From Takakia lepidozioides (Eukaryota; Plantae; Bryophyta): a DNA stretch of 64,000 nt. The notes below the pieces were generated by a model. That model had not been told where the DNA came from. It ran no database searches and saw only the letters and a list, made by a program, of their open reading frames with translations. The DNA is taken from the NCBI GenBank assembly GCA_030704615.1, contig CM060731.1:35960001-36024000 (forward strand), read 5' to 3'. Made by a program: the position numbers and the translations under genes. This document shows, piece by piece, positions 17,556 through 64,000 of the stretch (its first letter is position 1; each line of letters opens with the position of its first letter).

Positions 17556-18011
17556 AAGGATGCGAAGGGAGTTTTCAAATGGCTGAACAAGATGTGGTGT
17601 CGTGGAACACGATGCTTGCAGGGTATGCACAGGAGGGGCATGGGATGGAGGCTTTGGAGACCTATAAGCAAATGATGGGGGAAGGGGTGAAGCCCGACCA
17701 CATCACGTTTGTGTGCGTTTGCAATGTGTGTGCAAGCCTGGCAGCCCTGGAAAAGGGCAAAGAGGTGCATGGTTGCATCGCCAAATCTGGAACTGTACCA
17801 GGTGTGAACCTGAACACTGCCCTGGTGGACATGTATTCCAAATGTGGGAGCATTGAGGATGCAGAGGGAGTGTTCAACAATCTGGCTGAACGAGATTTGT
17901 TGTCGTGGAACGTGCAGGATATGCACAGCAGGGCGTGGGATGGAGGACTTGGAGACCTATGAGCAAATGATGGGGGAAGGGGTGAAGCGCGACCACATCA
18001 CGTTTGTGTGC
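17556..18011 (+). pseudogene. PLS-class PPR fragment (S-P-L-S-P motifs), truncated at both ends
   Basis: DVVSWNTMLAGYAQEGHGMEALETYKQMMGEGVKPD / HITFVCVCNVCASLAALEKGKEVHG / VNLNTALVDMYSKCGSIEDAEGVFNNLAERD. Same repeat family as 55750-60990. Confidence 0.92.
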
Positions 18012-19268
18012 TGTGGCTGCAAAGGGGCAAAGAACAAAACAATGTTCTATGTTTTCTATGTAGTTGAGATTGCAGGAACCACAGATGGAAGGGGGATCTG
18101 CAACAGAAGCACCCACTGGAACAATTTTATTGGCCAGTTTCCAATGGAAGGATGCACTCTTAGAAGGCCTGTGCTTATTCCAAATATCAGCCCAAACAAA
18201 GTTCCAGTGGATCGGGGGGCCATTCAAGTGATCCCACTTTCTATTCCATTTTCTTTCAAAGAGCTGTTTTGGAACCAAGAGAGAGTAGCCCAAGTTGACG
18301 GTATAGGAAAAGAAATGGTCCTACTTCTTGTTCATCCATCGCCACTCTCCCGGATCAAATTGGAGAAGCTCGATTGGAGCAGCAAAGAACCAGTTAAAAA
18401 GAATCCCAATAGTGCTGCAGTTCATCAGGCGGATGAGAATTAATTTTTCCTGAAGTGGAACAGAAAACTCTAATAAAGTAATACTTCACTGAGGCTAAGA
18501 GCTGATAAGGTCTTGGTTTGCACAAGGTTCCATCAGGGAAAGCAATGAAGTTGACTCCCGAGATAGTGTCTTGGGTTTTATGGAATGCATACATAGCCAT
18601 AAGCTGCGATCCCATAGAAAAACCCAGCCATAAAGGCAGCACAAGACGGTTTGGTTGCGCAAGGAGATCAACCCAACAAGGTGGGAGAGTGCCCATTACT
18701 GTGTTCCAGCCAGCATTGACTATCCTCAGAGAGGGACCCTCTGAAGCAGCAGACGAGGAGCTATGGGAGAAGCAAATGCAGGATACCCAAAGTGCAGCAG
18801 GTGGGAAAGACCCGCATTTTCCCAGTGTGCCCAACGCTTAGAACAAACAATGAGTTCCTCCGCATCTCTGTTATAGTTAGCAAAAAGAGGTTATTTGAGG
18901 TCTTCGTCAAAGGTTTTAGGCATAGATTGGAACAAGAAAGGACGCACAATACATCAAGCAGTCCAAATGGACTTCCAAGAACCCGTATCCCCCCCCCCCC
19001 ACCCATGAACCATCCACCTCAGCGAGGCCGGCCATAGCGGGCTAGTGTTTGGCTTTGCCAATGCCAGGTGATGCCTTACCAAACGGCTCCAAGGACTATC
19101 CAGATCAATAAAAATTCGAGGGATCCATTTGGCAAGCAGAGAAGTTATTTGAGCAAGCGGATCCAACACTCCCAGACCTCCGTGTTATTCTTTTGACAAA
19201 GTTGTGCCCAACTTATCAAAGCCTTTTTGTTCATGGATGCAAAGGTAGCTCCTCATATGAAGTTCCTA

Positions 19269-40700: not shown

Positions 40701-43700
40701 GCAAACTGGTGCTTTCTTATCTCTTTAGGTTCAGGTGAGCTTAGATCCACAGTGGTCACGATACAATCGCATCCTGCTGTCATGTCAGTCATCAGGTAGT
40801 TGTGCCTTGCTTGCTGGAGTATGTGTGGCTGTGATCCAGAAGAGTTCATGTCAGTATAAGCCCCTGCCACTGGTCCCAGTATTGCAAATGAATTATGAAG
40901 GAAACTTTTCTCCAGCACCATTACTGTTCAGTGATGATTTTCCCACTGGATTTATCAATAATGGATGGACTGAGCATGACTGCTAATATATGTGCATGAG
41001 CTCAGTCTCACGGGGACTCCCATTTTATATCTGTGGTATTGACTTCCAAAGTGATAGAAAAGGTCACAAAAGGACATTGCTCTGCACTCAGGCAGGAGTA
41101 TTTGTGGGCACCGCCAGCGACCGGTCACACAGAGATGCTGACATGGACTGTGTCAGAATCCTGAAGGTTGTTGTGCATGTAACAGCACTACTTGCACAGA
41201 TGTTTGCGATCTCTGCACGGCTTAGATCCCTCGAGTGCTTGAGGATCTGGAAAGGACCCTATAGGTGGTGATTAGAAGTGTGGACAACGGTTGCCAAAAA
41301 ATCTTTTTCTAGTAGGGGCTGGGCCTGAATACATTTCACAACTCCATCCGTATTTTTCTTGGGTTGAACACAAGGCAGAGTTTGATGTGTCTGTAGTTTT
41401 CATTGCAGATAGAGTATATATTTTCAGACAAGACGGGCACCCTGACCCGAAACTTGATGGAGTTTTTTAAGTGCTCCATAGCTGGGGTGATGTATGGCAC
41501 TGGCGTTACCGAGATCCAAAGGGCAACTGCTCGTCGGACAGGCGTCCCTGTTGAGGAGGTTTGCATTTCCAACTCCATGGAATGGAAGCTGTCAGCTAGT
41601 GCTGCCACCTGAAGCCTATAAGATCTTAATCAATCCAAAATTTGTTTCGCAGCCTTGTGGGAGTATTTTAGGGGGTATCTCACAGACATTGGAACTTCGT
41701 GAGCAAAAGAAAAAGAAATTTCCGTTGGTTTGTGGCCTCACATAAAAGTGTAGGCCCTGGCAGGTCGAAATTCGAGTCTGGTGCATAGCATGTGAGAACA
41801 GCTGTGTTTCTTGTATTTCTGTTTATAACATGGCAGGAGAAGCTTTGTGACTTATGACGCTCAGGTGTCAGAAAAGATGTTGTTGCTGCCATGAAAAAAC
41901 TTCCATGCAATAAATTTTTCTTTTGGTCAGATTCTGCGATCAGATGATGCCATACGGGAGAAAGGATTTAATTTTGACGATAGAAGACTAATGAGTGGGC
42001 GCTGGCGGAATGAAGTTAATCCTGAGGTTTGCAAGGTACTATATTGTCTAGACAAGTTGTTCCTGAAAGATGCCATACCTTCTCTTCAGCAGATGGTTGT
42101 CAAAGGTTACCTTCAGACTACTATTGTAAGTTAGGAGTACGGATTCCAGTTCCACACAGCACTGCATCTATCTCTCTTGATTGTGAACGGCAGTAAGAGG
42201 TGTGTGATGAAATTTTTCTCATCAAAGGTATGTCTCTTGCTGACTTTCATTTTCTTTCTTTGCAGGAGTTTTTCAGATGTCTGGCAATTTGTCATACAGT
42301 GTTGCCAGTGGGGGAGGACATACCAGAAAGGATTACATATCAGGCAGCGTCCCCTGATGAGTCTGCACTGGTTGCTGCAGCCAAAAACTTTGGCTTCTTC
42401 TTCTATGGGTAAGGCCAACCTCTAGGTGTCATCATACAGTGGTCGTAGCACAATACAAATACAGAAATGCCTCTTATCATTTTAGGAATCTGAAGTCAGG
42501 GTTTACAAAATGGAATTAGTCACCTGTGGGACAGGAGTCTTGTTTCAGTTGGCCCAAAGTGAGGTTAACTTTTGATGAGAGGACTACCAGAGTCTGCATA
42601 ACGGATGTGAACTGATTGCTTTTGAGTATTAAATACGTTGGAATGGACTGACAGGCGGTCACCTGCAGCAATCCGAGTTCGAGAGTCACATGTGGAGAAG
42701 TTGGGGCGGATGGTTGACGTGGAATATGAGATTTTGAATGTTTTAGAGTTCAACAGGTCAGCGTTCTAACCTTCAATGTGGATTGGTGAGGGTAAAAAAA
42801 AATCATTTATCCAGATCCGTCTTGATCTTCTTTGTAAAGAGCATAGCTATGTGGTATATAATATGTGCAGTGCAAGCAGTGGCTTTGGTCACTAAGATCT
42901 CAAACATTGTCCGCGTTGCAATCTTAACGCACTTGGCAACTTGGGAATGTAGATGTCATGCTCTACTGCCGGTGTCTCTTTTCATAAAGTGTGTGGCTTT
43001 GTTGAACAGCACTAGGAAGCGCCAATCTGTCATATGTCGTTATCCCAGTGGAAGGCTGGTTCTGTACTGCAAAGTAATCTCCCATACTTCCATAATTTTT
43101 CCAACTGTTTGTGCTGTAGATGTGTCGGACAAAACATTGTGACTAACATGAATGTGATGGGCTGTATTGCTGCTGGTGCATCTGAGGGATGCTCAGTATG
43201 TGTAGAGGTGTTGAATGGAAATTGGGAGCTTCTCTGGAGATTCCTATATGGTCAAGGATGCCAATGTGTACCTGCCATGGGGTGCTCCAGGATGAACAGG
43301 ACTCATAACAATCGTTTGAGCTTTAATTAGCTTTTTTTGTGATGTATATAAATGTGGGTGATTTAACTCAGTTGTAAAACCGTCCCTTTAATGAGAATTG
43401 CTACGAGGAAGTGGCACTAACAGTTGCGTGGAAATTTTTTTAAGTATGTGCTGACCATAGTTGAGGTCTACATGGCTTGTCATGAAAGTAATGTTGCTGC
43501 CATGGGGTTGTGAACTTTGCCATTGTTTCTTGTCACTGTAGTCACATGGCATTGTCTCAGAACTACATGTAAGGATTGTTTATCAAACTTACTCCATTGT
43601 ACTGCACATAGTCGTTGCCGTCAATAGTCACCTGTTTTTAGTTCGGATTGATACTAGATGGTGACTAGGACCAGTGGTTGATGTACTCACAGGGTGCTGA

Positions 43701-46700
43701 CACAGTGATTTATGAGAGAATGGCAAATGATCGCTTAAATGGATACAGAGAGGTGAACCGCGACCATCTGGAGAAGTTTGGGGCTGATGGGCTCCGGACC
43801 TTGTGCCTGGCCTATCGGGATTTGGACCCACTTCTCTATGAAGCTTGGAATGAGAAATTTATTCGGGCCAAATCAGCACTACGAGACCGGGACAAGAAAC
43901 TTGATGAGGTAATGAGCCTATTCCTGAGAGGTTTGGTTAGGGTTTCCAACAGAGTAAGCGAGATATTACAATATGTGGGGATGTTTGAAGAGGGAGACCA
44001 ACAGGAATGAATGGAGAAACTAAAACTTGGATAGAGGTGATGGAATAGAATTTGACCCAGGTCACCTGATCTAGGTGCTGTGGTAGAGGCACAAAAGGGT
44101 AGGAAGACATTTTGTAGTCCCACTGCCTTGAGGGCAATCATTATGTCATCTATTTGGCCGATGTTTCTGATTATCACCATACATTTTCTATTCCTTCCTA
44201 TTTCAACTATTTACATGTTACTTTGGTTGTGTAGGTTGGCGAGCTGATTGAGCATGAGTTGATTTTGCTTGGGTGCACAGCGATTGAGGACAAGCTGCAA
44301 GAAGGGGTGCCGACTTGTATAGAAACTCTTGCCAAAGCTGGAATCAAGATCTGGGTGCTTACGGGTGACAAAATGGAGACTGCCATCAACATCGCCTATG
44401 GTTCAAAATTCCTCCCCTCTGTGAAGCTGTTAGTGTAGGTTTGTTGCATGGAGTATCAACTCATGTATAGACCCAACATAGACTTTAGATGAGTAGCTTG
44501 CATCAGTGGGTCATGCTGGAATAGAGAACCATCTGTCAGTGTGAGTTCATGGACTGTTGTCAAGCACCTTTACAGTAAGATCCGCACTACAAGGGAGGTA
44601 GTTGGAAGGGGAAGTGTCAGTTATCGACTGATACACATACATAAGAAAGGAGAAAGAAATAAAGAAGAAAGGAAGAAAGACATTTTCCACAGGGGATCCA
44701 CAAGGGCCCATGGACAAGGTAGATCAAATGTATGACCACTTGATGATACTTCAACTGACGCGCTAAGAAGAAAAGGAGCTTTGTCACATATGCAGAAAGC
44801 CGAAGAGCTTATGTACAGTAATACAAAAAGCAATTAAGAAGAGGGGTTGTGCCTGTTGGTGTGCAGCTTGCAGCTTGCTTAGAAATGAGATGAAGCAGTT
44901 CACTGTCAGCTCAGATATAAAGATGATTCGCGACGTTGAGGACAGAGTGAGTAGTAGACTTTTGGCTGATAGTGAGTAGTTGATCTGACTCCCTATTGAA
45001 ATGCAAAGGCTGCTTTCCATCGTAGGAAGAGGGTACTGGGACAAGTACTAGATGTTACTCTCTAGAATAGAGCTAAAGGCTTCAATTTAAAGGAAAGATT
45101 AGGGCAAGAGATACTGGAAGAGGTGCTGACTTGTGTCAATGCAGGGTGACCCTTTGGAGACAGCCCAAGTGATAGAGGAGTGTGTAACACAGCAACTGCG
45201 GGACTATCTTCATGAGGCTCAACATTGTGCCCCTGGATTGGATCTTGCTCTTGTGATTGATGGGAGGTGTCTGATGTATGCATTGGACCCACAGAAGCTT
45301 CGGGGCACTCTTCTTCAGTTGAGCATGCGGTGTAAGGCTGTTGTCTGTTGCCGTGTTTCGCCCCTGCAGAAAGCTCAGGTATGGACAGGGCATCTATTCA
45401 TGTGTGGGTGTGCCTCCCCTTAATCATTGGCTCATCTTAATGACATCTACTATCAAGTCTCTTCTATAAAACAGTATGCACTAGTTGAGGCTTGCAACCA
45501 TGTTTCTGGAGTCCTGAACTAGTGATGTCTGCCTTGATTGATGACAATTTCATGTTATAAAATCTTTGACATCCCGTTTGTAAAGAAGTCAGCAAGGATT
45601 AGAATTCTGCTCACTGTTTTTATAGGTCACCACTTTGATTAAAGATGATGCCCGGAAGATAACGCTGAGCATTGGTGATGGAGCGAATGATGTCAGCATG
45701 ATTCAGGCCGCCCATGTTGGGGTTGGTATCAGTGGGCAAGAAGGGATGCAAGCTGTGATGGCGAGTGATTTTGCGATTGCACAGTTTCGATTTTTGACTG
45801 ACTTACTTCTGGTCCATGGACGATGGTCTTATATCAGGATATCCAAGGTACATATCCTTGTTTGTTCATAAAATCTTACTTATTTCCCTTTCCCCTTTCT
45901 CTATCTTTTTGTCATTCCCTCGGAGACCCCTCAGGCCTCCAGTGATTGTCTCTGTCACACAGACCCACTCCTCTTCATACATCTCCCAGGTCTATTCCAG
46001 GATACCCAATCTCTTGTAGGTCTTCCACTACGAGGATCGGAAATGCTTGACAGCTTACCTGCATGAGGCATCTTAGACAATCCCTGAGGAGTAGTTGCTT
46101 TTGGGCTGCCCTGCTCTCTTTCTTTTTCTCTCTTTCTGTTCTCTTATATTGCACCATTTCATTTCATTTTTCTTTCTCTCTCTTTCTTCCTCCTCGTTTT
46201 GTCTCTCGTTTCTCTCTCGCGCGCGCGCGGCAGCACGTCGGCGCTCGCGCGTCGGCGCTGCGCTCACGGGCGTTGGCGCGCTAGCGCCATCTCCGCCACT
46301 CCATGACGTCCAAACGCCAAAGGACGGCTGCCGACGAGGTAGACTACCCGTCTCCCTCACGTCGACCTGATTCCCCTCTGCTTCTTCTTCCTGCCCCTGT
46401 CTCTCATCAAGCCTCTCCTTTGCGTCAGTACTCCACAAGGAGTGCCGATGTTCAAACGCTTCGGGACCAAATCTCCATCTTACAAACGAAATGCATCTCG
46501 GAGGAGACTCTGCAGCAAGTGCTCGCTGCCCGTGACAATGACTCGGAGGAGCGGTTGGCTTCCCTAGACAAAGACTGGGAGACGCGGATGGCTTCCCTTA
46601 ACAAAAATTGGGAAAAGCGCATGGATTCCTTGGACAAAGATTGGCAGAAACGCATGACTTCCTTGGACAAAGATTGGCAGAAGCGCATAACAGACAGATA

Positions 46701-49700
46701 CACAGACTTGGAGAACAATATGCGAGTTCAGGATAACGTTTTGCGGGCCTCTCTTCAGGAGTGCACTAGCAAACTTCAAGGTCTGGCGAAACATCTCAAT
46801 GACAAATCCACACATACGCGTCTTTCAAAACTTGAAGGCGAAGTGAAGACCTTCACAGAGAAGAGCCTCCCAGATCCCCTCACAGCAAGCATCCATCTGC
46901 AGGTGGAATCCCTTAGCAAAGAGCTGGATACACACAGAACTGCGACGTCTACAATGGCTCGGGAGCTCCAAGCTCACAAGGCAGAGGCCTCCTCCTGGGC
47001 TAATATAGTTAAGGGGAGCACATCCAACAACAGTCCTCACTCTCTGGAGGAGACAGTCTCGGCTACCTTGCGAGAGGAACAACAACGGGCTTTCAAAGCC
47101 CTTAACATCAGGGTCACTGGGAAGCTAGGGGGCCTTGTTGAGGGGGACCCTCTTGACGCTGCCACCAGCCTTATTCAAAAAAACCTGCTCTCCCACGGGG
47201 CGCGAGTGGCATTGAAAGGGCTTGGCGTGCAGGATCTTCAGAGAACAAAGTCCTCTTCATTAGATTCAAGGACAAGGGTGCTCGGGATAGAGTCCTCAGG
47301 CAGAGGCCTCAATTGAGAGGTCAGGGTATGTACCTCAACGATGACTTGACCCCTTTGCAATACAACGCCATGCGGGCGCAACTCTTGCAGGTTAAGCAAG
47401 CTCGAGCTCAAGGGCACTATGCCGTGTACCGAGATGGGAGGGTAATTGTCCGGGAGCACGAACGTCGCCCCTCTAGCTCTAAATAGGGGTTGGGGCACCA
47501 TGAGACCAACGCACGCTCACATCTACACATTGGCTCATGGAACTGTAATGGCTCGTTGTGGAGCCACCCTCAAGGGCTTCTAGATATTCTTTCCAAGTGT
47601 GATGTTCTTTTTCTTTTGGAAACTCATGCGTATGAAGGAAAGGACCCCCCCTTTATTCTCGGGTATAGCTTTCAGTCAGTGATTCGTCCACGTACAGGTC
47701 TCAAAGGATCTGGAGGTGTGGCTTGTTACTTTGCTGACTGGCTTCTCCCACTTATCTCCTTCCCATACAAAGACCCACTGGCAAGGTACATTTGGTGTCG
47801 CATCAAAGGCTACAACATCCTGCTGGCGGGATGTTATTTTGCTCCGGCCGCATCTCCACACAACGGCCTACATATTCGAACAGATTCACCATATGTTCCA
47901 TTGGAAGACGATATGGCCCGTCTCCGTACCCCACAAACGGACTTTTTCTTGTTTGGAGATTTCAACGCCCGTACAGGATCACTACAGGCCCCCACCTTCG
48001 ACCACACAGATCTTCTACACATCCAACGCTCGCATACGGAATTGGAGAGGCAAAGTGCAGATTCCTCTTGCGAAATCACAAGTTACGGTCACCATCTACT
48101 CAAGTTTTGTGAAACTCAGGGGCTATCCATTTACAATGGAACAACCAACTTCAAATCCTCCAGCCAGTTCACTTGCCACACGTACAAGGGCCAAAGCGTG
48201 CTTGATTATCTCTTGGGGAGCCCCAACAAGCCTGATAGAATAAGCTCCTTTTACATCACGAGGTACCCGGATTCTGATCACTCTTGCCTTTCCTTTGCAT
48301 TTCCTTGCATCTCCCTCCCCGTGAGGATCCCCTCTGCGTCTCTTCCCTTACATCCACGTATCCACTTTAATACCCCTTTCTCTCACTTACACGACGCCGA
48401 GTATGAAACATACCTAGCGTCGACCCTCCCTTCCATTCTACATCTATCATCTCCTAACGACAAGGCTACACATCTTACTCAAGCCCTTTGGGACTCAGCC
48501 CTGCGATCCTTTCCCGTCACCCTTCCATCTATCTCCTCACCCTTCTCCACTCGTCGTTACGCACCATTTTATGATGAGGAATGCAAGACTGCTAACTGGC
48601 AGATGGGAAAACCTGCAACGGGAGGACCGCCTATGTCCAGCTTGCATAGGGCGCAGCAAGGAAATTGAAACTGAAGAACACTTCTTCTTCTACTGCCCTC
48701 TATACTACGAGATCCGTGGGAGATTTCACTGTTTATCCAGTGGAACCCAAACTCTCACTGATGTCTTTCACTATGAGGATCAAAAATGCTTGGCAGCCTA
48801 CCTACACGAGGCCTTCACCCTTAGACAATCGCTAGAACATTAATTGTGGTTTCTGGATTTGTTCCTCTCTCATGTTTTCTTCCATTTTGTCCCATAAGCT
48901 TTACGAGCTTTCCGCGGACGTTATAAAGCACCATTTCATTTCATTTCTCCAGACATCCTTTGTGCCATCTCTTCTATGTATGAGATTGTCACTGGCATGG
49001 TCAACGTCGCTGGTGAATTCTCAGCCGAGATCCACAGCAACATTGGAGTCAAACAGGGCTGCCCCCTTTCACCTACCCTGTTCGGGATCTACATTGACGC
49101 CTTGGAGAATTACATAGCGAAAAACCATGGGGTTGGGGTCCCATTGGATGGGGGACCAACCCAATCAGATCTCCTCTATGCTGATGATGTTGCCCTTTTG
49201 GCACAATCCCCAGTCTTTCTGCAACGCAATCTCAAAATTTTGGAACAGTTCTGCAAAGACTATGGGATGCAGGTCAATCTTAGCAAGACCAAGATCATGG
49301 TCTTCAATGGCCAGGCTGATCGTAGATTCATCTTCAACCAGTAGGAAATTGAGATTGTGAAATCATACCGGTACCTAGGTCTGGTTATCCACTCCCCAAG
49401 TTTCACTTTGCAGCCACTGCCTTGGACAGGTTGACTAAAGGTAAGGCGGCCTCCGTCCGCCTTCAGGCCAAATGCAAGCAAATACATCTGCGGCATCCCC
49501 CGACCAAAAAGTGGCTGTTTGACACCGTCGTCAGCCCTGCTACCATCTATGGTTGTGAGTTCTGGGCACCTGGTGTCCCTGTCTCCTGGTGGGAAAAGAA
49601 TTTGGAACCATTACAGTCATCTTTTCTCCAAGCAATGCTTGGCGCCAGGAGCACAACTCCATCTCAGATCCTAGGTGCAGAGTTCGCATGTGTACCATTG

Positions 49701-52700
49701 CAATCCGAGGCCCTCTTCAGGCTTACAATCTTTCTCCATAGATTGCAGGCCCTTCCACCCAAAGGGCTAGTGGCAAGGGCCCTCACAACATCTATGAGGC
49801 TCAAAGCTGCAGGTTTCAGGAACTCCTGGTATGCTCGAGTGGACAGTTTATTTCAACGTAACGGACTTTCTACTGCTTTCCTATTACCAATGAACCCAGA
49901 TGAGGTGGACATCACATCCAGACATGACCGCAACAGACTCATTCGGAGAGAGCTTATGGAATTACATGTCAAGAGAACTTGGATGCTACCCAATCTCACG
50001 ACAAAGCTCCACTTCTATCGAGAGACATTCTTGGTGCTCCGCGATGATAGAATCTTGAGACCAAATTACCTTTCAGCACCCTTATCTCCTTCCCTCTTGA
50101 GGGTATTGGGGCGGTTCAGGGTGGGTTCCCACAACCTACGGATAGAGACTGGCAGATGGGAAAACCTGCAACGGGAGGACCGCCTATGTCCAGCTTGCAT
50201 AGGGCGCAGCAAGGAAATTGAAACTGAAGAACACTTCTTCTTCTACTGCCCTCTATACTACGAGATCCGTGGGAGATTTCACTGTTTATTCAGTGGAACC
50301 CAAACTCTCACTGATGTCTTTCACTATGAGGATCAAAAATGCGTGGCAGCCTACCTACACGAGGCCTTCACCCTTAGACAATCGCTAGAACATTAATTGT
50401 GGTTTCTGGATTTGTTCCTCTCTCATGTTTTCTTCAATTTTGTCCCATAAGCTCTACGAGCTTTCCGCGGACGTTATAAAGCACCATTTCATTTCATTTC
50501 ATTTCTCTTCTCCCACAAGCTCTTTGAGCTTTCCGCAGACGTTATAAAGTACCATTTCATTTCTTCTCTGCATGTTTGGTTATCGAATGTGGGCATTGCA
50601 TGACAGGTGGTGGCTTACTTTTTCTACAAGAATGTGGCGTTCACAATGACACAATTTTGGTTCAATACTTTCACGGGGTATTCTGGCCAACGATTCTACG
50701 ATGACTGGTTTCAATCATTATACAATGTTCTCTTTACAGCTCTACCTGTAATTGTGGTTGGCATATTTGACAAGGTGATTACATTCAGAGCATAATGTGT
50801 GATACACGAGATGCTCATCTCTTGCATCTACCAGCAAACGTCATCAATTGGAATTTGTATTTCTTGATCCCAATTTTGTGGATGCAATGAATTAGTTTTT
50901 TTTTTTTTTTTGAAGGGACAGTAAGTAATCTCGTTGAATTTTCAGCTGATGTTACCTTTTCTCCTCTCTTTAGCAGTGTGAAATTGTGTCCAGACAAGTA
51001 TTGCTTACATAATAGATTTAAATGTCCTCCATCCATCTATTTGTATATTTGTTTGTGATGTAGGATGTAAGTGCTTCCCGATCAAAATCTTGCCCACAGC
51101 TGTACAGTTCAGGCATTGAGAATTTGCACTTCAAGTGGAGGGTGCTGTTTGTGTGGATTACTTTCGGATTGTACCAGTCCTTGATCTTTTTTTTCTTTCC
51201 AGTAATAGCTGGCAATAGTTCCCAGAATGAATCCAGTAGAATGTTTGGAGTGTGGGATGTTGGGACTATGGCCTACACTTGTGTAATAATCACTGTGAAT
51301 GTTCGCCTCTTGATGGCCTGTACATCCATTACAAAGTGGCACCAAATCAGTGTATGGGGCAGCATTGGAGCCTGGTTTCTCTTCGTCTCCGTCTATTCTG
51401 CGGTGACGATTGCATTTAGACAGGTTCATTTTCTGCCCAAACTTGACATCCCCAGCTCACTGCTTTTTTTACTACTGAAACAAGTTGTGGTTGGTGTGCT
51501 GCCAACCAACTCGGCATAACCAAACTAATTCAAACACCTTTATGATCCTTAGATCAAGCCAGAAAGTCATTTTCTGTCCATGAGTTGGAAGTGAGTCAGA
51601 AATCCCGAACTCATTGCCCCAGACTTCACCTACTGAAAATTAAGTATCTTCATACAATTGATGTAGATGCTGTGGTTGAGGTTTTCGTAGTACAGACTTT
51701 GTTCCCGGTTGTTCCTCCTCTATGAATGGAAGAAGAAAAGGGAGAGTGGTTCAGAAAAAACAAAGAAGCAGACTAAATGATAACCTTTCACCATCAAACA
51801 TAACACATGACAGCATCATGTGATGGATGGAGAGACTAGATTCTATTGTTGGTTGTCTGATACCGCCCATTGCTCTTCTACTGCTGTTTGCTAGATATTC
51901 TACTCTCTCTTTTCCACCCTCTGGAAGGATTTGGGGGAAATGTCCTCAAGATCAGGAGTTTTCTAATCAAATGGGAGGGAGCACGGTAGACAATATAAGG
52001 AGGATCTTACATGCCTGCTTCCTTTCCTTGTTTCTTGTCTGATCGTAACCAGAAGATCATAGTACTTGTGCAATGGGTTAAGAAATTTCGCAATATGGCA
52101 GCTTGGCATTTGCTTGTAACAATTTTTGTTAACATTGTGCAAGAAGGGATCGACCACTTTGTCTTGTGTTGGTTGATGGCTCACACTGTGTGCATGCGGT
52201 GCAGGAAAATATATACTGGGTGATCTTCAATGTGATGAGCACTTGGTATTTCTGGTTCTCAATCCTGTTGGTCCCAACCGTTGCATTATTAGCCGACTTC
52301 CTGTTTGTGGGGTAAGTGTGTTCATCGTGATCACTCCAAGTTGGGTTTCGGCAATTACCTGAGACTTTCATACACAGCATTGTCGATTGAGGGTCTTTAG
52401 TATTTACCTGCCAACTACAATTCTGTTTGCGAAGTTGTGAGATACTCAAGTTGACAATCCTAAAGCACGTTATCATTATCAGTCGCTTTCCCAAGGGGAT
52501 AACTGCTTCCTATTGAATGCACAGATTTAGAACGGTAAAATTATGCACCTAGATTCTAATGCAAATATGTGGGCAAGAAACTGCAGGATACAGCGGTGGT
52601 TTTTCCCGTCCGACTACCAAATCATACAGGAGGACATGAAGTACTGTCAATCTTCAGAGATTGAGGATTACGAGCGGCAGAAAGAGATAATGGGTATGCT

Positions 52701-52941
52701 TGATAGCCCAGATGGATTGACAGTGGAGGAGGAGAGGACACTGGGTATGGTACAGCTTCCAAGAGAGTGCTCTAAGCACACAGGATTCGCATTTGACTCC
52801 CCTGGATTCGAATCGTTCTTCGCCATGCAAGAGGGCGTGACTGCCCCAGCCAGGTCATGGGACATTGCACGTCGCGCCTGCGTGAAATACCCTCGTCGTG
52901 GCAGCACCTCTCTTTCTAGAAGGAGTTCGGTGTTTCTCTGA
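34731..52941 (+). CDS. ALA3: Phospholipid-transporting P4-ATPase (flippase), ALA3-like, 27 coding exons, ~1231 aa
   Basis: Exons 34731-34880, 35507-35572, 35848-35909, 36579-36660, 36883-36993, 37253-37330, 37734-37830, 38152-38258, 38381-38446, 38659-38780, 39165-39252, 39686-39763, 40543-40659, 41409-41558, 41931-42035, 42266-42408, 42655-42756, 43010-43073, 43693-43908, 44235-44400, 44867-44946, 45145-45378, 45626-45847, 50607-50774, 51064-51423, 52205-52311 and 52587-52941 join in frame (3696 nt). Motifs DGETN, PISL, DKTGT, SPDE, TGDK, GDGAND and [16 protein letters not shown]. Confidence 0.95.
46303..47486 (+). CDS. LINE ORF1 (coiled coil with 11-aa repeats plus an RNA-binding-like C-terminus), one frameshift near 47200
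   Basis: [44 protein letters not shown]. After the frameshift it reads IERAWRAG...VLFIRFKDK...[11 protein letters not shown]...[10 protein letters not shown]...SSK*. Confidence 0.75.
47490..48594 (+). CDS. LINE ORF2 N-terminus: APE-type endonuclease; RT deleted in this copy
   Basis: [40 protein letters not shown], then FYDEECK and a jump to the element's 3' end at 48595. Confidence 0.9.
48947..50396 (+). pseudogene. 5'-truncated LINE ORF2: RT C-terminal half and Zn-finger-like tail; one in-frame stop at 49342-49344
   Basis: [55 protein letters not shown] and a CCHC-type tail. Confidence 0.9.
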
Positions 52942-55749
52942 AGCTAATTATCTGATAGGTGCTGCAGACAAGCCCACTGCTAATCAAGCGAACAGATTTG
53001 GTGACATCATGTGTTGTATCTAGCTTTGCACCCAACTTCCTTTATTGAAGACGCGTGGTGGTCATCCCCTCCAACACTTCAACTCCACAGGTATCCGCAC
53101 AGGGCAGAGGCCTTGCATTTCGTTTCCGGAAGAGGTGGAAATTGCAATTGGGAATCATGATTGCAACCACAATCCCAAAGGTTATCCTGCATGCTCTGGA
53201 TGATTTCATGCAAAACTGGGAGATAAAATGTTATTGCAGCCAGACTGTAGTCTACATGCTCTTGGCTACCTGCCCTTGTAGAATGTTATGCTCACGATCT
53301 TGTGCTGGGGCTCTTTACCGCTCATTGGAACCATGTGTGTTAAACTACGGAGCTTTTTCATCAAAAGCCTTTCATGAATATTCCTCTCTGTAGGTTGCAG
53401 CTGGATGCCAAACTTCCTTTCCTTTCCTTTCCATTCCTTTCTTCTTCTGTAAAATCTACTGGGCGGTGAAATTTTACATGGATCTAGCGGGATTAATTTA
53501 ATGATTCCTGTGGGAGATCTTAAGGTTCTCTAGATAAACACGGATTCTGATGACCCTGGGACAAGTTCATTTTATGCCACACAACCTGAGAAACAATGTC
53601 CGGGTGTAAAAACTGAAACCCGCAAGCCGAGTCCTCACGAGAGGGAGAAACCCATTTAAAGACGATAAACCAGCAAGCCCTCAACCACCACCTTGCATAA
53701 ATCCCAGATTTGGGCGTGTCAATGCCTGCACGGTGCCGTTTAAACTCAAGAATATTTACATTTGGCTCAGATTGAGTTGTGCTGAACTGATTGTTCGACT
53801 AAACTGATCCTTCTGCAAGGCCACAGTTATGCTTCCTCTGAGATTTGGAATCAGGTGCAAATATCCTGTCGTGAATTTCGAGCCGAAGGTGGGGTCGGAC
53901 ATGCAAATATGTAGAGGCTTGTCAGGTAGTCAAACCGACAGCTCACTCACGAGTCACATTCTGTCTTCTCGTGAATCAATGTTTAAACTATAAAAACACG
54001 TGCAGACGTCACGAGCATCTTGCAGCTGATGTCTTTCAGGATTGACACGGAACTGTGTCACTTACAGCTTGAGGGACACTTGAGGGACCCTCCTGTGGTG
54101 ATGTATGTAGCAGGCATGTAGTAGTATGTATTTGTGGGACCCACTTATCAAAAGTTTCATACGTCAGGGATTCTAGTAGGAACCGTGGAGATGCTCTCCC
54201 TAACTGTTATACTTTCTTTCCGAACGTCTTTGGAAAGGTATGATTCGATACTTCTAATCTACTAAAAAAAGGAGGACACTATGCATCCGTTACATAAGTT
54301 GATCTTACCTCTAGATCCTAGCTTGGCTTTTCATGGGTATAAAGAGACGGTACTAAGTTGCTGGGTAAGTCTTGTCAAACTTGCATGAAACAACCCAACA
54401 ATGAATACATCTGCAATAACCAAAGAACAGATGCAGTAGCCGTCTCAAACTTGAACAGTGCTTCCTCTCCCTACACCCACCTTTGATAGAATAAAATTAT
54501 AATCTCCAAAAGCTGATCAAGCTTCCATCCTATCTTCTGTATACCAGATCTTCTCCTTTATGCTCGTGAATTTCAGGACAGAGTCGGTAAGATCAACAAA
54601 TCTTAGTTTGACTCTTACTCAAGAAAACCTCTGCCAGTGTTCGACTTTGCTTTCAATGTCCCTCCGAAGTTTTTGGGCTCCAAGTCCCACGCATGCAAAT
54701 CTGTGGTCTCGAGAGCACTTGAGGGGCTGCCTCTCATCATCTGGACTATAGTGCCACAGTTGCAGCTGCGGTAAAAACAAAAGTATTTTTACCCTCTGAC
54801 GGTGTGAAAAAACCAGGGGTAGCGGCAATTCCTGGTGCTTTTTTGGCATCGAATGACATCACCCGACGATTCCCAGGTTGCCGGTTTCCTGTTTCCGACA
54901 TCAGACCTGCCGGGAGTAGTTCCCGGCTCGCAGTTGCATTTGCCGGCACAGGCACCTGAGTTCATTCCAAATGCCATTGCCGGCGATGTTTCCGGATGCC
55001 AGCATGTTATGACACATGGGTCTTTGCCTAGATAGTATATACACAGGCATACGTATGTTGAAGGATGTGATCCATGTGGACATACCTACACCTCCATGGC
55101 GTGATCCGCATCAGAGGGATGACACTGAAGCACATGGTGTGTCCATGGCTTAATGAGTCAGTCAGTAAATAAGATTTTTTTTATAAAAGTTGGGCGGTTA
55201 TGAACCTTGGCCGGTTATAACCGCCTGGTATTAGACCGGTTATATATATAGCCAAGCATTAGATGGGGCCTGGAGTTGAATGCGAGGGAGCCGGTTCAGC
55301 CAGCGTGGAACCCCCCCCCTCCATCGGCTGCACACCACACCGGCAGCTGCCGCGCGGCACGCCCTCCCGTGCCTCATGTGCCCGCTGCCTCATGTGCCCG
55401 CTGGGGACATGACGCATGCCCTGGCCATGCCCTCTCCCGCATCCCCATCCCGCCTCCCATCCTGCCCTCATGCCTGCCATCGTCCTGCATCAAGCATACA
55501 TCATGCAATCCCAAGCATACATCATGCATTCATGAAATTATGCATAATTCAAAAATTATTCTGACAGGTATTCAAATTTCAAATGGCAAATCTGAGCAAA
55601 GGACTTGACGTTCAGATGTATGCCACGTCGTCACATACATGGCCACCCCAATTGAGGGTTTTGCTACCCTCATCGTGCATTTCCTCGTACAGCAGTTCTC
55701 TCCATGCTTTCCAACCGCGTCCCTACGCAACGAGGGCGTTCATATTCCA

Positions 55750-57690
55750 TGGAACGCGATGGAATGGTGTCATGGAACGCGATGATCACAAAATATGCAC
55801 AACACGGTCTGGGATGGAGGCTTTGGAGACCTATGAGCAAATGATGCGCGGGAGGGGTGAGGCCCAACCATATCACGTTTGTTTGCATTTGCAATGCGTG
55901 TGCGAGCTTTGCAGCCTTGGAAAAGGGCAAAGAGGTCCATGGTGATATCATCAAAGCTGGAATAGTACCAGACGTCATTCTGAACACTGCCCTGGTGGAC
56001 ATGTATGCCAAATGATGCAAATGGAATGTTCGACAACATGGTTGAACGAAATGTAGTGTCATGGAACGCGATGATCGCAGAATATGCACAGCACGGGTGT
56101 GGAATGGAGGCTTTGGAAACCTATGAGCAAATGATGCGCGGGGGGTGAGTCCCAACCATATCACGTTTGTTTGCAGTTGCAATGCGTGTGCGAGTCTTGT
56201 AGCCTTGGAAAAGGGCAAAGAGGTCCATGGTGATATCGTCAAAACTGGAATAGTACCAGACGTCATTCTAAACACTGCCCTGGTGGACATGTATGCCAAA
56301 TGTGGGAGCATTGAAGAGATGATGTGGGAAAGGGTGAAGCCCGACCGCATCACGTTTGTTTGTGTTTGCAAGGCATGTGCAAGCTTGGCAGCTCTCGAAA
56401 ATGGCAAAGAGGTCCATGGTGACATCGTCAAAGCTGGAAGTATACCAGATGTTATTCTGCACAGTACCCTTGTGGACATGTATGCCAAATGTGGGAACAT
56501 TGAAGATTCAAATGGTGTTTGACACTACGGCTGAACGTGATGTGGTGTCATGGAACGCAATGATTGCAGGATATGCACAGCAGGGCGCAGGACTGAGGCT
56601 TTGCATACATATGAGCAAATGATGCAAGAAGAGGTGAAGCCCAACCACATCACGTTTTTTTGTGTTTGCAATGCATGTGCAAGGGTGGCAACCTTGGAAA
56701 AGGGCAAAGAGGTCCATGGTGACATCGTCAAAGCTGGTATTGTACCAAATGTCACTCTAAACAATGCCCTCGTGGACATGTATGCCAAATGTGGGAGCAT
56801 GGAGAATGCAAAAGGAATGTTCAACAATATGGCCGATCGAGATGTGGCGTCCTGGAATGTTATGATTGCAGGATATGAAGGAATGCAAACGGAAAGCTTG
56901 AAGCTGGACAGTATCACCTTTATATGTCTTCTCTCTGCATGCAGCCACATTGGCCTACTGGATGAAGGAAGATCAACATCATGTCAACATCATGATGTCT
57001 CTCCGACAGTAAAGCACTCTGGCTGCATGGTGGACCTTCTTGGACATATGGGGCAATTGGATGAGGCAGAAGAGCTTTTAACAAAATGCCAATGAAACCA
57101 AATGCTATGGTTTGGAGGGCCTTGCTTGGTGCCTGCAGAATCCATGGCAATGTGGAGATGGTTGAATGTGCAGCAACATCTATTCTCAAGTGGGATGAAC
57201 AAGATGTTGCGACGTATGTCTTGCTATCAAACATCTATGCTGCAGCTGGCAGGTGGGACGATAGTGCAAAGGTACGAAAAATGATGAAGGTCAGAGGGGC
57301 TAGAAAGAAGCTAGGTCATTGTTGTCTTTGTTATAGATGACAAATTGCACCCCAAAATTAAGGAAATCCATGCTGAGCTGAGAAGATTGTCTGGACAGAT
57401 GAAGGAGGCAGGGTATGTGCCTGACACGCTTTGTATTACATAATGTGGGAGAGGAGCAAAATGAATTTTCTCTTTGCCACCACAGTGAGAAGTTGGCCAT
57501 TGGTTTTGGGCTGATCAGCACGGCCTCTAGGAGTACACTCCGGCTCATCAAGAATCTTCGGGTGTGTGGTGACTGCGACACCTCCACCAAGTTCATTTCA
57601 AAGATTGTTGGCCGCGCAATTGTTGTACGGCATGCTAACCGCTTTCACCACTTTGAAGATGGGGTTTGTTCTTGCGGGGATTACTGGTGA
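55750..57690 (+). pseudogene. PLS-PPR-E-DYW (C-to-U RNA-editing factor) pseudogene, intronless and 5'-truncated
   Basis: Repeated P-L-S triplets, then SGCMVDLLG, VWRALLGACRIHG, YVLLSNIYAAAGRWDD, and [15 protein letters not shown]...KNLRVCGDC...[15 protein letters not shown]. Several frameshifts and deletions, including in the PG box. Confidence 0.93.
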
Positions 57691-57709
57691 AACAGTTTTT
57701 TCTGGAAAA

Positions 57710-57852
57710 TTGTGGTGACTGCCACACCTCCACCAAGTTCATCTCAAAGATTGTTGGCAGTGCAATTGTTGTACAAGATGCTAACCGTTTTCACCACTTT
57801 GAAGATGGGGTTTGTTCTTGCGGGGATTACTGGTGAAACAATTTTTTCTGGG
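57710..57852 (+). repeat. Tandem duplication of the last ~145 bp of the DYW gene (CGDC...GDYW* plus a few 3' bases)
   Basis: Near-copy of 57565-57707. Confidence 0.9.
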
Positions 57853-59059
57853 AAGATGCAAGTGTCTTGCTTCATTCATTGATCTGTGTAGCTACTCAGT
57901 TCATCCACCATTTCTGGAGAAGATTGACCATGATGTACTGTTGAGGGCATTTTCCTGCTACATATCCACAAGAAAGGGTAGTGGGGTAGGTGAAGTTAGC
58001 CCATACTTGCACTTGACTGGAGCAGGTAATGAGTAAAGGGGGGATTTCGACTGACTCTGGTGATAGTGGAAGGAAATTAGAGTGTTGTGCTAGTTCTAGT
58101 GTGGAACATGTCCAAATTTAAGATGCTGAACAAACTTGTGCATAGGGCTATCCTTCTAATCAAGCTCATTACGAATTGTATTCACTTTCATTTGGCCTGA
58201 ACCTTCACGTAGTGATTGTAAAGTACTTGAGATGCTGATCTCAAACAAGCGGCAAGATCTCCTAAATATCCAATACCACATCACGAAAAGCAAACCTCTT
58301 TTTCTCAATCTCTTGCTTCCAGTAACTGTCCAATATCTCAAATTTGGACCCAAAAACTTATGGGTGAATCTCTTGATCCATCATGTTGGTTCAATTGATA
58401 TTAATACAATTACATCAAAATAATGGATATGACTAATGAGAGGGTAATGTCGACCGCTCCTCCTTTGGCTGTGACGGCATTGTCACAACAAGACTCCACT
58501 TTGTCTTGTGATGTGGTGTGACACTCAACTCTTATGCTAAGGGTGGGATGTGTTACACCCAGGATCACCCTGGTTATGCGTAGGCAAGGCACAACTACCC
58601 AACCACGCATGACTACAGATCATATAACAAATATCTCTCCCAGATAGAGTGAAGATCATTCCCACAAAGGAGACTCTGTCTGGCTTCCTGTTGGTAAGGA
58701 AAATGTTTGCAGTATCTTTCTTTTTCTTGTATGAGATACAATTATGCAATCCAATGAGAGCCACATGTCATATCTGTGGTCAAATTGGGAGCTCCAGTAG
58801 CAATGCAGGCATACACATTCTATTTGCTAGCATGATCTGATGCCTGTAATCATATTGCTTTTGATCATGTGGGTGCAAAGCGCAATCTCGGGCACCTCCT
58901 GGTTGGTAGACTCCACAATCAGCTCTTGTTGCGTTGTTATGCCGGGGGGAGGAAATGCCTTTAAAAGTATGTCATAGTCGACATTCCCAGGGCATTGGCG
59001 AATGAACCAAGCAGCTGGATGCTTTTAATGAATGAAGCAAGCCACTCACAACATCAATT

Positions 59060-60990
59060 CACTAGAATAAACCCATCCTCAAAGTGGTGAAAGCGGCTGG
59101 TATCATGTTCATCAATTGCTCGCCGAACAATCTTTGAGATGAACTTGGTGGCTGTGGCAGTCACCACACATTCAAAGGTTCTTGATGAATCAAAGAGGTG
59201 TCCATGGTGCCGTACTCATCCGCTCAAAATTAATGGCCACCTTGTTGTGGTGGCAAAGAGAAATTTCTTGTGCTCCTACATATCATGCAATACAAACGTG
59301 CGTCAGGCACGTACCCGACCTCCTTCATGTGCCCAAACAATCTTCTCAGCTCAACATGCATTTCCTAATTTGTGGATACAATTGTCATCTACCACCAAAT
59401 ATGTGGACCCGTTTACCAAAGTCAATGGAGCAGCGACCTAGCTGCTTTTTGATACCTCTGAATTACATCATTTTCCTCACCTTTGCAGTATCGTCCCACC
59501 TGCCAGCTGTAGCATATATAAGTGATAGCAATTCATAAGTTATGGTGTCCTTGTTGATCCCACTTGAGAATAGATTTTGCCACAGATTGTGCCACCTCCA
59601 CATTCCCATAAATTCTGCAGGCACCAAGCAAGGCCTTCCACACCGCAGCATCTGGTTGGACATGCATTAATTTGTTGATGATGTCCTCAGCCTCATCCAA
59701 TCACCCTGCACGGCCAAGGAGGTCCACTATGCAGCCAAAGTGTTCCATTGTAGGAGTCAGGCCATGATCTCGATGCAGGGAATCAAAGTAGTGTTTGCCT
59801 TCATCCACTAGACCCCATGACTACATGCTTGGAGAACACATATAAAAGTGATACTGCAGTTCGGCGTTAAGCCTGCCTTGCTTATGACAACCATGCTGGG
59901 CATATCCTGCAATCATGGCAGTCCATGATACCACATTTCGTTCAGCCATACTGTTGAACACTTCCTTTGCATCGTCAATGCTCCCACATTTGGCATAAAT
60001 GTCCACAAGTGAATTGTTAAGAATGACATCTGGTACAATTCCAGCTTTCATGATGTCAGCATGGACCTCTCTGCCCTTTTCCAGGGCTATCAGGCACGCA
60101 CATGCATTGCAAACGCAAATGAAGGTGACCTGATCTGGCTTCACCTCTTCGCCCATCATTTGCTCATAGGTCTCCAAACCCTCCATTCCGCATCCATGCT
60201 GGGCATATCCTCCTATCATTGTGTTCCATGACACCACATTTCGTTCAGCCATTTTGGCGAACACTCCCTTTGCATCCTCAATGCTCCCACATTTGGCGTA
60301 CATGTCCACGAGGGTGTTGTTCAGAATGACATCTGGTACAATTCCAGCTGTCACAATGTCAGCATGGACCTCTCTGTCTTTTTTCAGGGCTGCCCTCCCT
60401 GCACACGCATTGCAAACACAAAGGAAAGTGACATGGTCTGGCTTCACCCCTACCCGGATCATTTGCTCATAGGTCTCCAAAGCATCCATTCCGCATCCAT
60501 GCTGGGCATATCCTGTGATCATAGCATTCCATGATACCACATTTCGTTCTGCCATATTGTCAAACAGCCCCTTTGCATCCTTGAGGCTCCCACATTTGGC
60601 ATAAATGTCTACAAGGGTGTTGTTCAGAATGACATTTGGTACAATTCCAACTTTTATGATGTCAGCATGAACCTCTCTGCCATTTTCCAGGGCTGCCAGG
60701 CCTGCACAGGCATTGCAAATGCAAATGAAAGTGACCTGGTCTGGCTTCACCCCTTCCTGGATCATTTTCTCGTAGGTCCTCAAAGCCTCCATCCCACACC
60801 CATGCTGGGAATATCCTCCAATCATAGCACTCCAGGAAACCACATATCGTTCAGCCATATTGTTGAACACTCCCTTTGCATCCTTAATGCTCCCGCATTT
60901 GGCATACATGTCCACCAAGGTGTTGTTCAGAATGACATCTGGATCAATTCCAGCTTTCATGATGTCAGAATGGACCTCTTTGCCCTTTCC
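59060..60990 (-). pseudogene. PLS-PPR-E-DYW pseudogene, intronless, truncated at both ends
   Basis: ORF 59821-60960 encodes three clean 101-aa P-L-S triplets, followed by frameshifted E motifs. In the DYW domain HSEK is reduced to HNK, and it ends at RFHHFEDG without CSCxDYW. Confidence 0.93.
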
Positions 60991-61460
60991 TCATCTGATG
61001 ACAACTCCTGAAATACTTGACTCTGCGACCTCTGTCCACACTGATTTCCGATGAAGATCACCCAAATTTTCTTGGGACACTGAGGCATGGGAGGCCTGGC
61101 CCTTCGTCCTATTTGTGGTTTTGCGAGGTGGCATGTGTCCATGGCGCCTGAGGACAACCTCCATAATAGCCTTCTGGCTTGGTGTGAGGGGCTCTTCACC
61201 TTCCCCATGCTTCATACAACCATCCACCCTATGCAAGTTCAATTTTTTTTTATCGGCAAAAAGCAGATCACAGTGTATGCATCTGTATTGTCGTCTGTTA
61301 GACGCACCAGGTTCATCGACCCTTGCCATCATGTAGGCCTCGCATATGAGGGACTCGTATTCATCAGTTTCATAAGTCTCGCGATATTCCCTCTAGTCTA
61401 TCATTTTGCTCTCCTTCATCCTGAGTGTTGCGTCTGCCAACAATTGTAGCAGCGTGCAAA
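60991..61460 (-). pseudogene. Remnant ORF with a C2HC/C2H2-like zinc finger, probably the carrier element's own gene
   Basis: YRCIHCDLLFADKKKLNLHRVDGC. The exon starts after tgtgtag (~61460), has one stop, and is cut off by PPR sequence at ~60990. Confidence 0.45.
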
Positions 61461-62325
61461 CCTACACAGACAATGCCAAGCATAAATCCACATGCCACTC
61501 ACTTGCTTGAACCCTCAAATTGCCCGCATGGCCATTGAAACCCCCAATACCTCTATGGTGTGCATGTCATTTACACTAAACCCTAAACCCCAAAACAAAA
61601 TGGAAGGACTGCAGATAATGACATATCTCAGAATGGAGAGTGTTCATGGCCGCATATGTGCACGTCCCTGGAGCTCGCAAGTGAACTATGGAAACAACAG
61701 TCAATCCAGGTCTGCTCCTTCACGTACCAAGCAAATATAACATGCAACCTGCTCAGATGATTGGTTTCAGATGCTCGATGCAGAACTCACTCACGCGCTA
61801 AATCCTGGAAGAAGAGCACAATCACAATCCGGAGAACACAGAAGAGAAATATCAAGGGATAATAAGGACCTGCACGCAATTGGAGATGAAGCGGTGCAAC
61901 CATTGAAGACAGCCAAAACATCCTGCTTCATAGCCTGATTGTCCATTCGTGTCCACAAACTGAACCTCTATGGCGGGACGCGGTACGCCAACACCCTACA
62001 AAATGGATAGCGACATTTTTCGCGATGGCTGCCAACAACACACCGTCCCCGTCTCATTCTACATGCAATGCAATGATATGGATGCAATGGAAGCATGCAT
62101 GTACCATGGGCAGGATGAAGGCATGCAGGGGGGATGGGGATGCGGGAGAGGGCATGGCCAGGGCATGCGTCATGTCCCTGCAGCGGGCACATGAGGCGCG
62201 GGAGGGTGTGCCGCGCAACATCTTCCGCGTGGTGCGCGGGCGATGGAGGTGGGGGGAGGTGGTGGGGGGTCCACGCTGGCTGAACCGGCTCCCTCACATT
62301 CAACTCCAGGCCCCATCTAATGCTT

Positions 62326-62369
<44 letters not shown>

Positions 62370-63015
62370 GAGGAGGTGCAAAAATCAGAAAACCGGATAT
62401 AAACAGATCCGGCGGAGGCAAGGAGTTGAGATAACCGGCAGGCTTCGATAACCGGCGAGCAAGTTTGGTTTTTTACTTATTGGTGTCCGGCCATGGCCTT
62501 AAAAAAGGACCCGGTTATCAATAAATAGTGTCAGCATATACCCTTGCTAAGATTAATGTGACACCAATTTGGTAACTAAGATGTCCATTATTGATCATCT
62601 GGATGATCCAGTTTCAAGGGCTAACCATCTTGCATGGCTGGTCAATCCCTTCTTGGCATTTATTTAAGTTTTTTAAAAATATTTTCATCATTTCAATATA
62701 TGTAAATTTTTATTTTATAAATAGTTCATTTAAGTTACATGACCGCAATATAACTGTTTTAAGGACCGCCGGTTATGAAGTATATTGAACTTCCAGAATC
62801 GGTTCAAAAAACCGCCTGTGCAAAGGTCTTTAATAACCGGAATTGAACTTAACCGGGTTTTTTGAAAACATCAAAGAACCGCCTCCTACAAGTTATTTAA
62901 TTTTTTCTTTTGTCCATTTAACCGCCTCCGGAGGTTCTAAAGAAGGGGCAATTGGCAAAGAACATGCACCGGAGGAGCTCACGAAAACCTGACAACCGCC
63001 CAACACTGGTTTTAA

Positions 63016-64000
63016 CCCTTAAGTGTCAAACCGACCCGTTTTGGGTTGGTTAGGTTTCTTTAACCAGCCATAACTTCCTGTGGTTAAGGCTGATTGGCCT
63101 TTTTTTTGGCTCAATCGACAGATAATCGGGTCCCCCTTCATGTGGCATTGGTCAATTGGTCAATGCCTGAAGGGGTATGGGTCTGGAACAATTGGAAGGG
63201 GGCACACTCAGCTTTTTGAGGCCAATTTGGCCCCCCTAACCTGCCCAAGTTGCTGACATGGCAACTGCGGTCAGGTTAGGGTGACTGAAAGATACCCCAT
63301 AAAGGTTAGGGTGGCGCGCTCCCCCAAGCCCCTTGATTGCCCGGCGGGGGCATGGCGCCCGGCGCAGGTCTGGGCATTCCCAGGCCTAGGCCCTAGCCTG
63401 AATCCAGGGCGATGGCAGCTCCGGCTAACGCCATGCGGGGCGGGCTGGAGGGAGTGCAGCGGCAGAGCTGGGGGCTCGAGAAAAATGCCATGAGGGGTGG
63501 GCCAAACCTAGGGCGGGGGTTTGAGAGGGTTGCGGGTGGAGTGGCCCCCCATGAAAGCAGGGCCGGGTAGCCAGAGGAGCTCCCAAACCCCGTGCCCTTC
63601 TGGGCTATGGCTCCAAATATCCTAGGCCTGCAGGCTATACCAAAGGTGTGTCATTTGAAGTCTTGGGCAGGGAACCTAAGGATGCGGTGCATTGGCTGAT
63701 TGGCCTCAAAGTTTTTCGGGGACTTCATATGGAAGCCCATGACATTTCAACCGGAGGGATTAGGGATTGACCGGCTGAATTTTTTTGCATAATTTTAGGA
63801 AAAGAGATTTTGGCCTGCCCAAAGAAAATGGCATATTTTGATCCCCCCAATTTGTCACTACAAAGGAGCCCGCTTGAGAACATTTCAGAAAAAACTGAAA
63901 AATTATGAGGATGTGTGTTATCAGGTATGGTACAACATTTTTGAGACTCTCAAACAGAAAAAATTAAAAATGCCCAAATACGAGCAAAAAACTGCTTTTT
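63016..64000. mobile_element. Possible left end of a TTAA-flanked (piggyBac-like) element
   Basis: TTAA|CCCTTAAGTGTC, followed by a GC-rich then AT-rich non-coding block that runs off the window. Confidence 0.3.

Follow-up and report, generated by a model that had tools for sequence, protein, structure and literature searches.

The contig CM060731.1 of the moss Takakia lepidozioides (assembly GCA_030704615.1) was analysed in a 64,000-nt window (positions 35,960,001 to 36,024,000 of the forward strand; all coordinates below are window positions). Between two TA runs this window contains a 7,078-bp element (55251-62328) with long terminal inverted repeats (TIRs) that enclose two decayed PPR-DYW genes. 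We read it, with a probability of roughly 0.65, as a non-autonomous, TA-targeting Pack-MULE, a Mutator-like element (MULE) whose cargo was gathered as DNA and which moved in trans as one unit. This reading follows from TIRs that are long, GC-rich and bounded by G...C, from TA runs in odd phase, an apparently split host element, the failure to find a transposase inside, and cargo from at least three sources. The features of the element and its immediate flanks are as follows.

55189-55240: left piece of a putative non-autonomous hAT-like host element, with GTTGGGCGGTT inverted with respect to 62994-63004 and four AACCG motifs
55241-55250: target site (TA)5; its final nine bases, ATATATATA, are compatible with a 9-bp duplication
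55251-55478, + strand: left TIR, starting GCCAAGC, 69% GC, with weak similarity continuing to 55534
55535-55747, + strand: leader of gene A, of unassigned origin, with no Pfam match and no similarity to the other arm
55748-57690, + strand: gene A, a 5'-truncated PLS-PPR-E-DYW pseudogene with nine frameshifts and DYW open at 57424-57690
57565-57851, + strand: 146-bp tandem duplication of the DYW tail, 134/146 identical
57852-58184, + strand: 3' flank of gene A, without poly(A), homologous to 58732-59058 behind gene B
58185-58731: middle segment, which matches neither arm and has no inner TIR remnant
58732-59058, - strand: 3' flank of gene B, homologous to 57852-58184 behind gene A
59059-60988, - strand: gene B, a 5'-truncated PLS-PPR-E-DYW pseudogene with an unbroken PPR tract and a broken E/DYW part
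60991-61440, - strand: 5' coding fragment of a C2HC zinc-finger gene, homologous to Ceratodon M758_5G026400 and adjoining gene B
61441-62061, - strand: leader with an acceptor-like AG (61463-61462) placed as in moss homologs, the remainder of unassigned origin
62109-62328, - strand: right TIR, with weak similarity continuing to 62062 and 18 variant contigs at 62257
62329-62366: target site (AT)19, adjoining the right TIR
62367-63008: right piece of the putative hAT-like host element, ending CAACACTG, with 12 AACCG motifs

Terminal inverted repeats and insertion site

The two TIRs (55251-55478 and 62328-62109) have core lengths of 228 and 220 bp and a GC content of 68-69%. A local alignment of 55241-55534 with 62339-62062 is identical in 243 of 261 aligned columns and scores 260, against a maximum of 32 for shuffled sequences; blastn, with gaps counted, reports 79.7% identity over 251 columns (E = 2e-59). 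The terminal 59 bp agree at 58 positions, and both ends begin GCCAAGC, which gives the element the TIRs of over 100 bp and the G...C ends of a MULE. (TA)5 at 55241-55250 and (AT)19 at 62329-62366 touch the TIR ends exactly and are two of the three TA runs of at least four units in the whole 64 kb.

The left flank ends ...TATA and the right flank starts ATAT..., and read outward they mismatch at each base. The TIR repeat therefore cannot be extended into the flanks, and a symmetric element requires a target-site duplication of odd length. The 9-bp sequence ATATATATA is present on both sides of the element in this odd phase, within a microsatellite in which any odd length fits, and the phase appears to fit the 9-bp duplication of Mutator elements. 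The typical ends and duplications of hAT, CACTA, Tc1/mariner and PIF elements are not found here: the odd phase excludes hAT (8 bp) and mariner (TA), which need an even phase, and the end sequence excludes CACTA. No transposase-like open reading frame (ORF) was found inside the element, either in the ORF list or with Pfam profiles of the ORF pieces, which were searched singly, and Rfam gave no match. As none was found inside, the assignment to the Mutator-like superfamily is inferred.

The outer flanks may be read, once rejoined, as a single AACCG-rich, hAT-like element of about 0.7 kb. AACCG/CGGTT motifs occur four times in 70 bp of left flank and 12 times in 640 bp of right flank, or 57 and 19 per kb as opposed to 0.5 per kb inside the element, and the first 55 kb hold no 61-bp window with at least four AACCG motifs and no 645-bp window with at least six. 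An 11-bp inverted repeat bounds the two flanks (GTTGGGCGGTT at 55189-55199, its complement at 62994-63004), a length that 11 of 2000 random pairs reach, and the right copy is followed by a CAGTGTT-type, hAT-type end at 63008. The left end of this putative host is imperfect, reading AAAA in place of the expected CAGT, and a piggyBac-like element at TTAA 63012 interrupts the duplication that belongs to the host itself. The preliminary description of this stretch had proposed GC-rich inverted repeats of about 230 bp starting exactly at (TA)5 and (AT)19, which the alignment, its shuffle control and the count of TA runs confirm. It had also proposed from shared AACCGG/GGCGGTT motifs that one hAT-like element was split by a single insertion, and this is supported by the motif density and the 11-bp terminal repeat.

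The piggyBac-like element (63012-64000) begins TTAA-CCCT 3 bp past the hAT-like end, and three DNA elements are clustered within 1 kb at the right side of the 7.1-kb element.

Two PPR-DYW pseudogenes

Pfam profiles (PPR, E_motif, DYW_deaminase) and tblastn identify gene A (+ strand, 55748-57690) and gene B (- strand, 60988-59059) as PLS-PPR-E-DYW sequences, which are convergent because each arm reads inward from its own TIR. Both are truncated at the 5' end and begin inside a PPR motif without a native N terminus. Their PLS triplets of 101 amino acids have normal code residues (S/D, N/D, N/N), the PPR parts have no introns, and dN/dS values of 0.27-0.45 between PPR repeats indicate that the sequence formerly evolved as protein under purifying selection.

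Neither gene has the single open frame of a functional PPR-DYW editing factor, which would begin with a targeting peptide, continue across the PPRs and finish in a DYW domain that contains HxE and CxxC. Six of the nine frameshifts in gene A fall in its PPR tract; its DYW domain (57424-57690) is open, with HSE, CGDC and DYW, and the DYW tail is followed by a 146-bp tandem duplicate that matches it at 134 positions. Gene B sits 1.1 kb from the right TIR, with part of another gene in between. Its PPR tract (60987-59887) is unbroken over 367 codons, or 3.6 units of 303 bp, and its E/DYW part has seven stops and five frameshifts, 12 breaks in all; the catalytic Glu and the terminal DYW are missing from this part. 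The earlier proposal that one PPR-DYW gene reads inward from each TIR side, and that both are decayed, agrees with these matches, frameshifts and stops. Two PPR-DYW sequences are indeed present, as it had claimed, although neither is a whole gene.

The two genes are 76-82% identical in DNA, and their 3' flanks are homologous over about 330 bp (204/300 identical; score 75, shuffle maximum 41). On these grounds they appear to belong to the same subfamily without being a recent mirror copy. A recent inverted duplication was rejected as the origin of the pair on the same level of identity and because the leaders do not align. Neither poly(A) tails nor short duplications were seen at either PPR-DYW unit, and no inner TIR remnant was found within the element. 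The nearest DYW protein in the protein collections is 91% identical and has no locus on record, and no close match to this large PPR family was found among annotated mosses. Within the leader of gene A, positions 55583-55750 (+ strand) code for residues that are rich in Ser, Pro and Arg and poor in acidic side chains and that may resemble an organelle targeting peptide.

A zinc-finger gene fragment as third cargo

A further piece of cargo, missed in the preliminary description, lies at 61440-60991 on the - strand. It codes for about 140 residues from the N terminus of a C2HC zinc-finger protein and has one internal stop. Two PPR-E-DYW units and a zinc-finger fragment, with no transposase found beside them, are thus what lies between the TIRs, as in a Pack-MULE. 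The few homologs retrieved are all moss-type and include Ceratodon (M758_5G026400) and Physcomitrium; in these mosses it belongs to the host and lies in conserved synteny with cullin and PEP carboxylase as its neighbours. For this reason, and because the homologs carry no Pfam transposase domain, the zinc-finger ORF was rejected as a transposase remnant. The moss homolog itself is an uncharacterised conserved protein of 650-1000 amino acids with an N-terminal C2HC finger and no convincing Pfam or Atlas match.

An acceptor-like AG (61463-61462) lies 21 bases before the presumed zinc-finger start, and the corresponding distances in two homologs are 24 and 28 bases. The match to a contig from an RNA-labelled run, 89% alike, stops at 61462, exactly at this AG. 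The putative 5'-untranslated region (5'-UTR) acceptor that has been kept and the position of the contig end favour capture from genomic DNA. The zinc-finger and PPR frames agree across one stop at their junction, which also fits a 1-bp loss, and no zinc-finger-PPR fusion protein was found among 1.84 billion representatives.

Copies elsewhere in the genome and order of events

Contigs of four sequencing runs (same organism or plant metagenome) were compared with 60600-63300, leaving out 62321-62373 as repeat; read depth was not taken as copy number. Variant contigs number 18 for the TIR (at 62257, one run), 10-11 for the zinc-finger piece and more than 120 for PPR sequence, so neither the TIR nor the right-arm cargo is single-copy in the genome. 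Such repetition of the TIR is a further Pack-MULE feature. At many sites all contigs differ from the window, as expected if the assembler drops the private changes of a single copy. Two matches to 20-mers of the TIR in metagenomes were rejected as chance bacterial matches.

The right part of the hAT-like host has 9-10 variant contigs from the same species, which differ from it in 3-6.5% of letters, and this provides a rough bound on the age of the insertion. For a divergence of 3-8%, the tail of gene B should contain 0.8-2.3 stops, and it contains seven (P at most 0.01), while the absence of stops from its PPR tract is unremarkable. The deaminase of gene B was probably dead before the jump, since it has more stops than the time at this site explains. 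All 12 breaks of gene B fall in E/DYW and none in the PPR tract (P = 4e-5 if uniform, in a post hoc test), a contrast that suggests a mosaic of parts of different age. The break-free state of this tract (59887-60987, - strand), compared with the six frameshifts in the tract of gene A, could also reflect a recent replacement from an active gene.

Proposed mechanism and alternative explanations

In the Pack-MULE interpretation, a MuDR-type transposase made elsewhere in the genome would recognise the two TIRs and place the 7,078-bp unit in the hAT-like element, at a short run of TA. This step would create a 9-bp duplication that slippage could afterwards have lengthened. The cargo would have been collected earlier and at the DNA level, as the lack of poly(A) and the 5'-UTR acceptor kept in the zinc-finger piece would indicate. 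One possible route is that two related elements loaded with PPR-DYW landed tail to tail and that their outer TIRs then mobilised the pair; fusion of neighbouring Pack elements is documented (PMC8903248). The cargo would be a passenger, such that PPR-DYW sequence is multiplied and working editors are not.

Several observations weigh against this interpretation. The target-site duplication cannot be read directly, since it is buried in the microsatellite, and no inner TIR remnant was found in the element that would support the proposed fusion step. Among the contigs matched to 60600-63300, we see no second full copy of the element, no contig that bridges the TIR-to-cargo junction, no TA flank of another copy, and no uninterrupted hAT-like copy that would represent the empty site; the loose ends and joints in this comparison are filled by PPR paralogs. 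The bound on age comes from two contigs, and the splice evidence from one low-depth contig of a run whose RNA status is a guess. Finally, the zinc-finger piece is 41-46% identical to moss proteins that are 79-99% alike in this region, so it is no fresh capture of an equally conserved gene. It may instead be an old capture, a diverged paralog, or the relic of a transposon accessory gene.

This last possibility is part of an alternative that we consider unlikely, in which the element is a passive sink. It would be a wrecked two-gene autonomous MULE, with a transposase arm and a zinc-finger accessory arm that converge as mudrA and mudrB do, and PPR-DYW sequence would have entered it by retrocopy insertion or ectopic recombination through sheer abundance, with no capture bias. 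The convergent layout, the far-diverged and multi-copy zinc-finger piece, and the abrupt start of both PPR tracts inside a motif are all compatible with such a history. A CACTA transposase in the same window also has PPR sequence behind it, and retroposition is the published main route of dispersed PPR copies (PMC13386178). However, neither PPR-DYW unit has the poly(A) or the short flanking duplications of a retrocopy, a transposase remnant was not found in the element, and the zinc-finger homolog is a syntenic host gene without a Pfam transposon domain.

Considerably less probable is that this is one element of another superfamily: an unclassified foldback element or, given a 3-bp duplication, a member of PIF/Harbinger. 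A duplication of 3 bp also fits the odd phase, G-starting ends occur in PIF/Harbinger, and no transposase is seen. On the other hand, TIRs longer than 200 bp and the targeting of TA are characteristic of MULEs, and the 3-bp site would be ATA rather than the usual PIF site TTA/TAA (PMC8903248). The least credible alternative is two independent solo insertions of a short repeat, facing opposite ways, on either side of two PPR-DYW pseudogenes that were already in place. In its favour, the genome holds many copies of the TIR sequence, and pairs of PPR-DYW genes are frequent in it. Against it, the one end that each arm has is the outer one at TA, an inner end being absent from both, and the motif density and terminal repeat of the flanks are not seen elsewhere in the window.

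Comparison with known systems

The class of element is a known one; its cargo is unusual. Rice Pack-MULEs (Jiang et al. 2004, to the extent that they are summarised in PMC13317346) are likewise non-autonomous, with long TIRs and several host fragments joined into a mostly non-functional cargo, and Pack-TYPE elements (PMC8903248) also have gene fragments inside a non-autonomous TIR element. Unlike the rice elements, the Takakia element is from a moss, is 7.1 kb long, carries cargo that is nearly all of one gene family in two convergent copies, and has its duplication hidden by insertion into a microsatellite. Medicago MuTAnT elements have long TIRs, TA runs of unequal length and 9-nt duplications (PMC4486113). 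With these and with TAFT, Micron and SaTar (PMC5907723) the Takakia element shares long TIRs, unequal TA runs, a phase compatible with 9 nt and a location near a gene. In contrast to non-autonomous MuTAnTs, which are 0.2-1.6 kb, and to three rice SaTar families classed as non-Pack (PMC5907723), it carries kilobases of gene cargo.

Genes A and B have the PLS triplets, E motif and DYW domain of PLS-class PPR-E-DYW editing factors (DYW domains 7O4E and 7W86; synthetic 9KFX) but differ from them in lacking a native N terminus and an open frame and, in gene B, the catalytic Glu and DYW end. As in the retroposition model (PMC13386178), the PPR copies are dispersed, intron-less and flanked by transposon sequence, whereas the vehicle here is a DNA transposon and poly(A) is absent. 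No paper linking Pack-MULEs to PPR-DYW cargo was found in the searched literature, which held few subscription papers.

Implications for PPR-DYW expansion

The origin of the thousands of PPR editing genes in early land plants is an open question. A survey from 2026 attributes this expansion to retroposition and reports 2,016 PPRs in Takakia, where features of retroposition are limited (PMC13386178). A second route, countable in one assembly, would be a family of DNA transposons that have defined ends and carry PPR-DYW sequence, and PPR counts in such genomes may include dead, transposon-borne copies. The anatomy expected of a Pack-MULE in the preliminary description, with host gene sequence between long TIRs, is what we observe. 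Its proposal that a DNA-transposon family ferries PPR-DYW genes gains from the multi-copy TIR (18 variant contigs) and loses from the fact that this copy holds pseudogenes only and does nothing detectable. A mechanism for explosive expansion, as it had put it, would apply at most to PPR-DYW sequence, which DNA transposons likely spread, and not yet to functional genes, as both cargo copies are broken and B was probably dead before insertion.

We regard as speculative, and rather improbable, a stronger version in which Pack-MULEs and other DNA transposons were, in this moss, a main route by which PPR-DYW arrays were copied, reshuffled and given new 5' ends, with some becoming working editors. 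If true, it would account for a dispersed expansion in Takakia with weaker signs of retrocopies, and the unbroken, selection-shaped PPR tract of gene B beside a long-dead DYW would mark recent array exchange between elements and active genes.

Other features of the window

CACTA transposase remnants (Transposase_21, DUF4218, DUF4216) at 14999-18026 on the + strand continue without interval as a PPR fragment (17553-18026), whose identity to the PPRs of the cargo is ~78-80%, and a CACTA-like end follows at 19047. Since PPR sequence lies behind this transposase as well, PPR-DYW sequence may end up in elements of many types in this PPR-rich genome.

Exons within 38000-52941 (+ strand) presumably belong to a P4-ATPase (ALA-type flippase) gene, judged by its motifs; two of its short exon ORFs have no Pfam match. 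A long interspersed nuclear element (ORF1, endonuclease, reverse transcriptase) lies at 46303-50570 in an intron of this gene, and the 7.1-kb element is ~2.3 kb downstream of it. The window also has an assembly gap of 500 N at 8833-9332 and, at 29802-31628, a gene that we assume from its motifs may encode a bHLH protein (446-aa ORF without a Pfam match). A fragment at 5953-6516 has motifs that we take to be those of ribosomal protein S19e.

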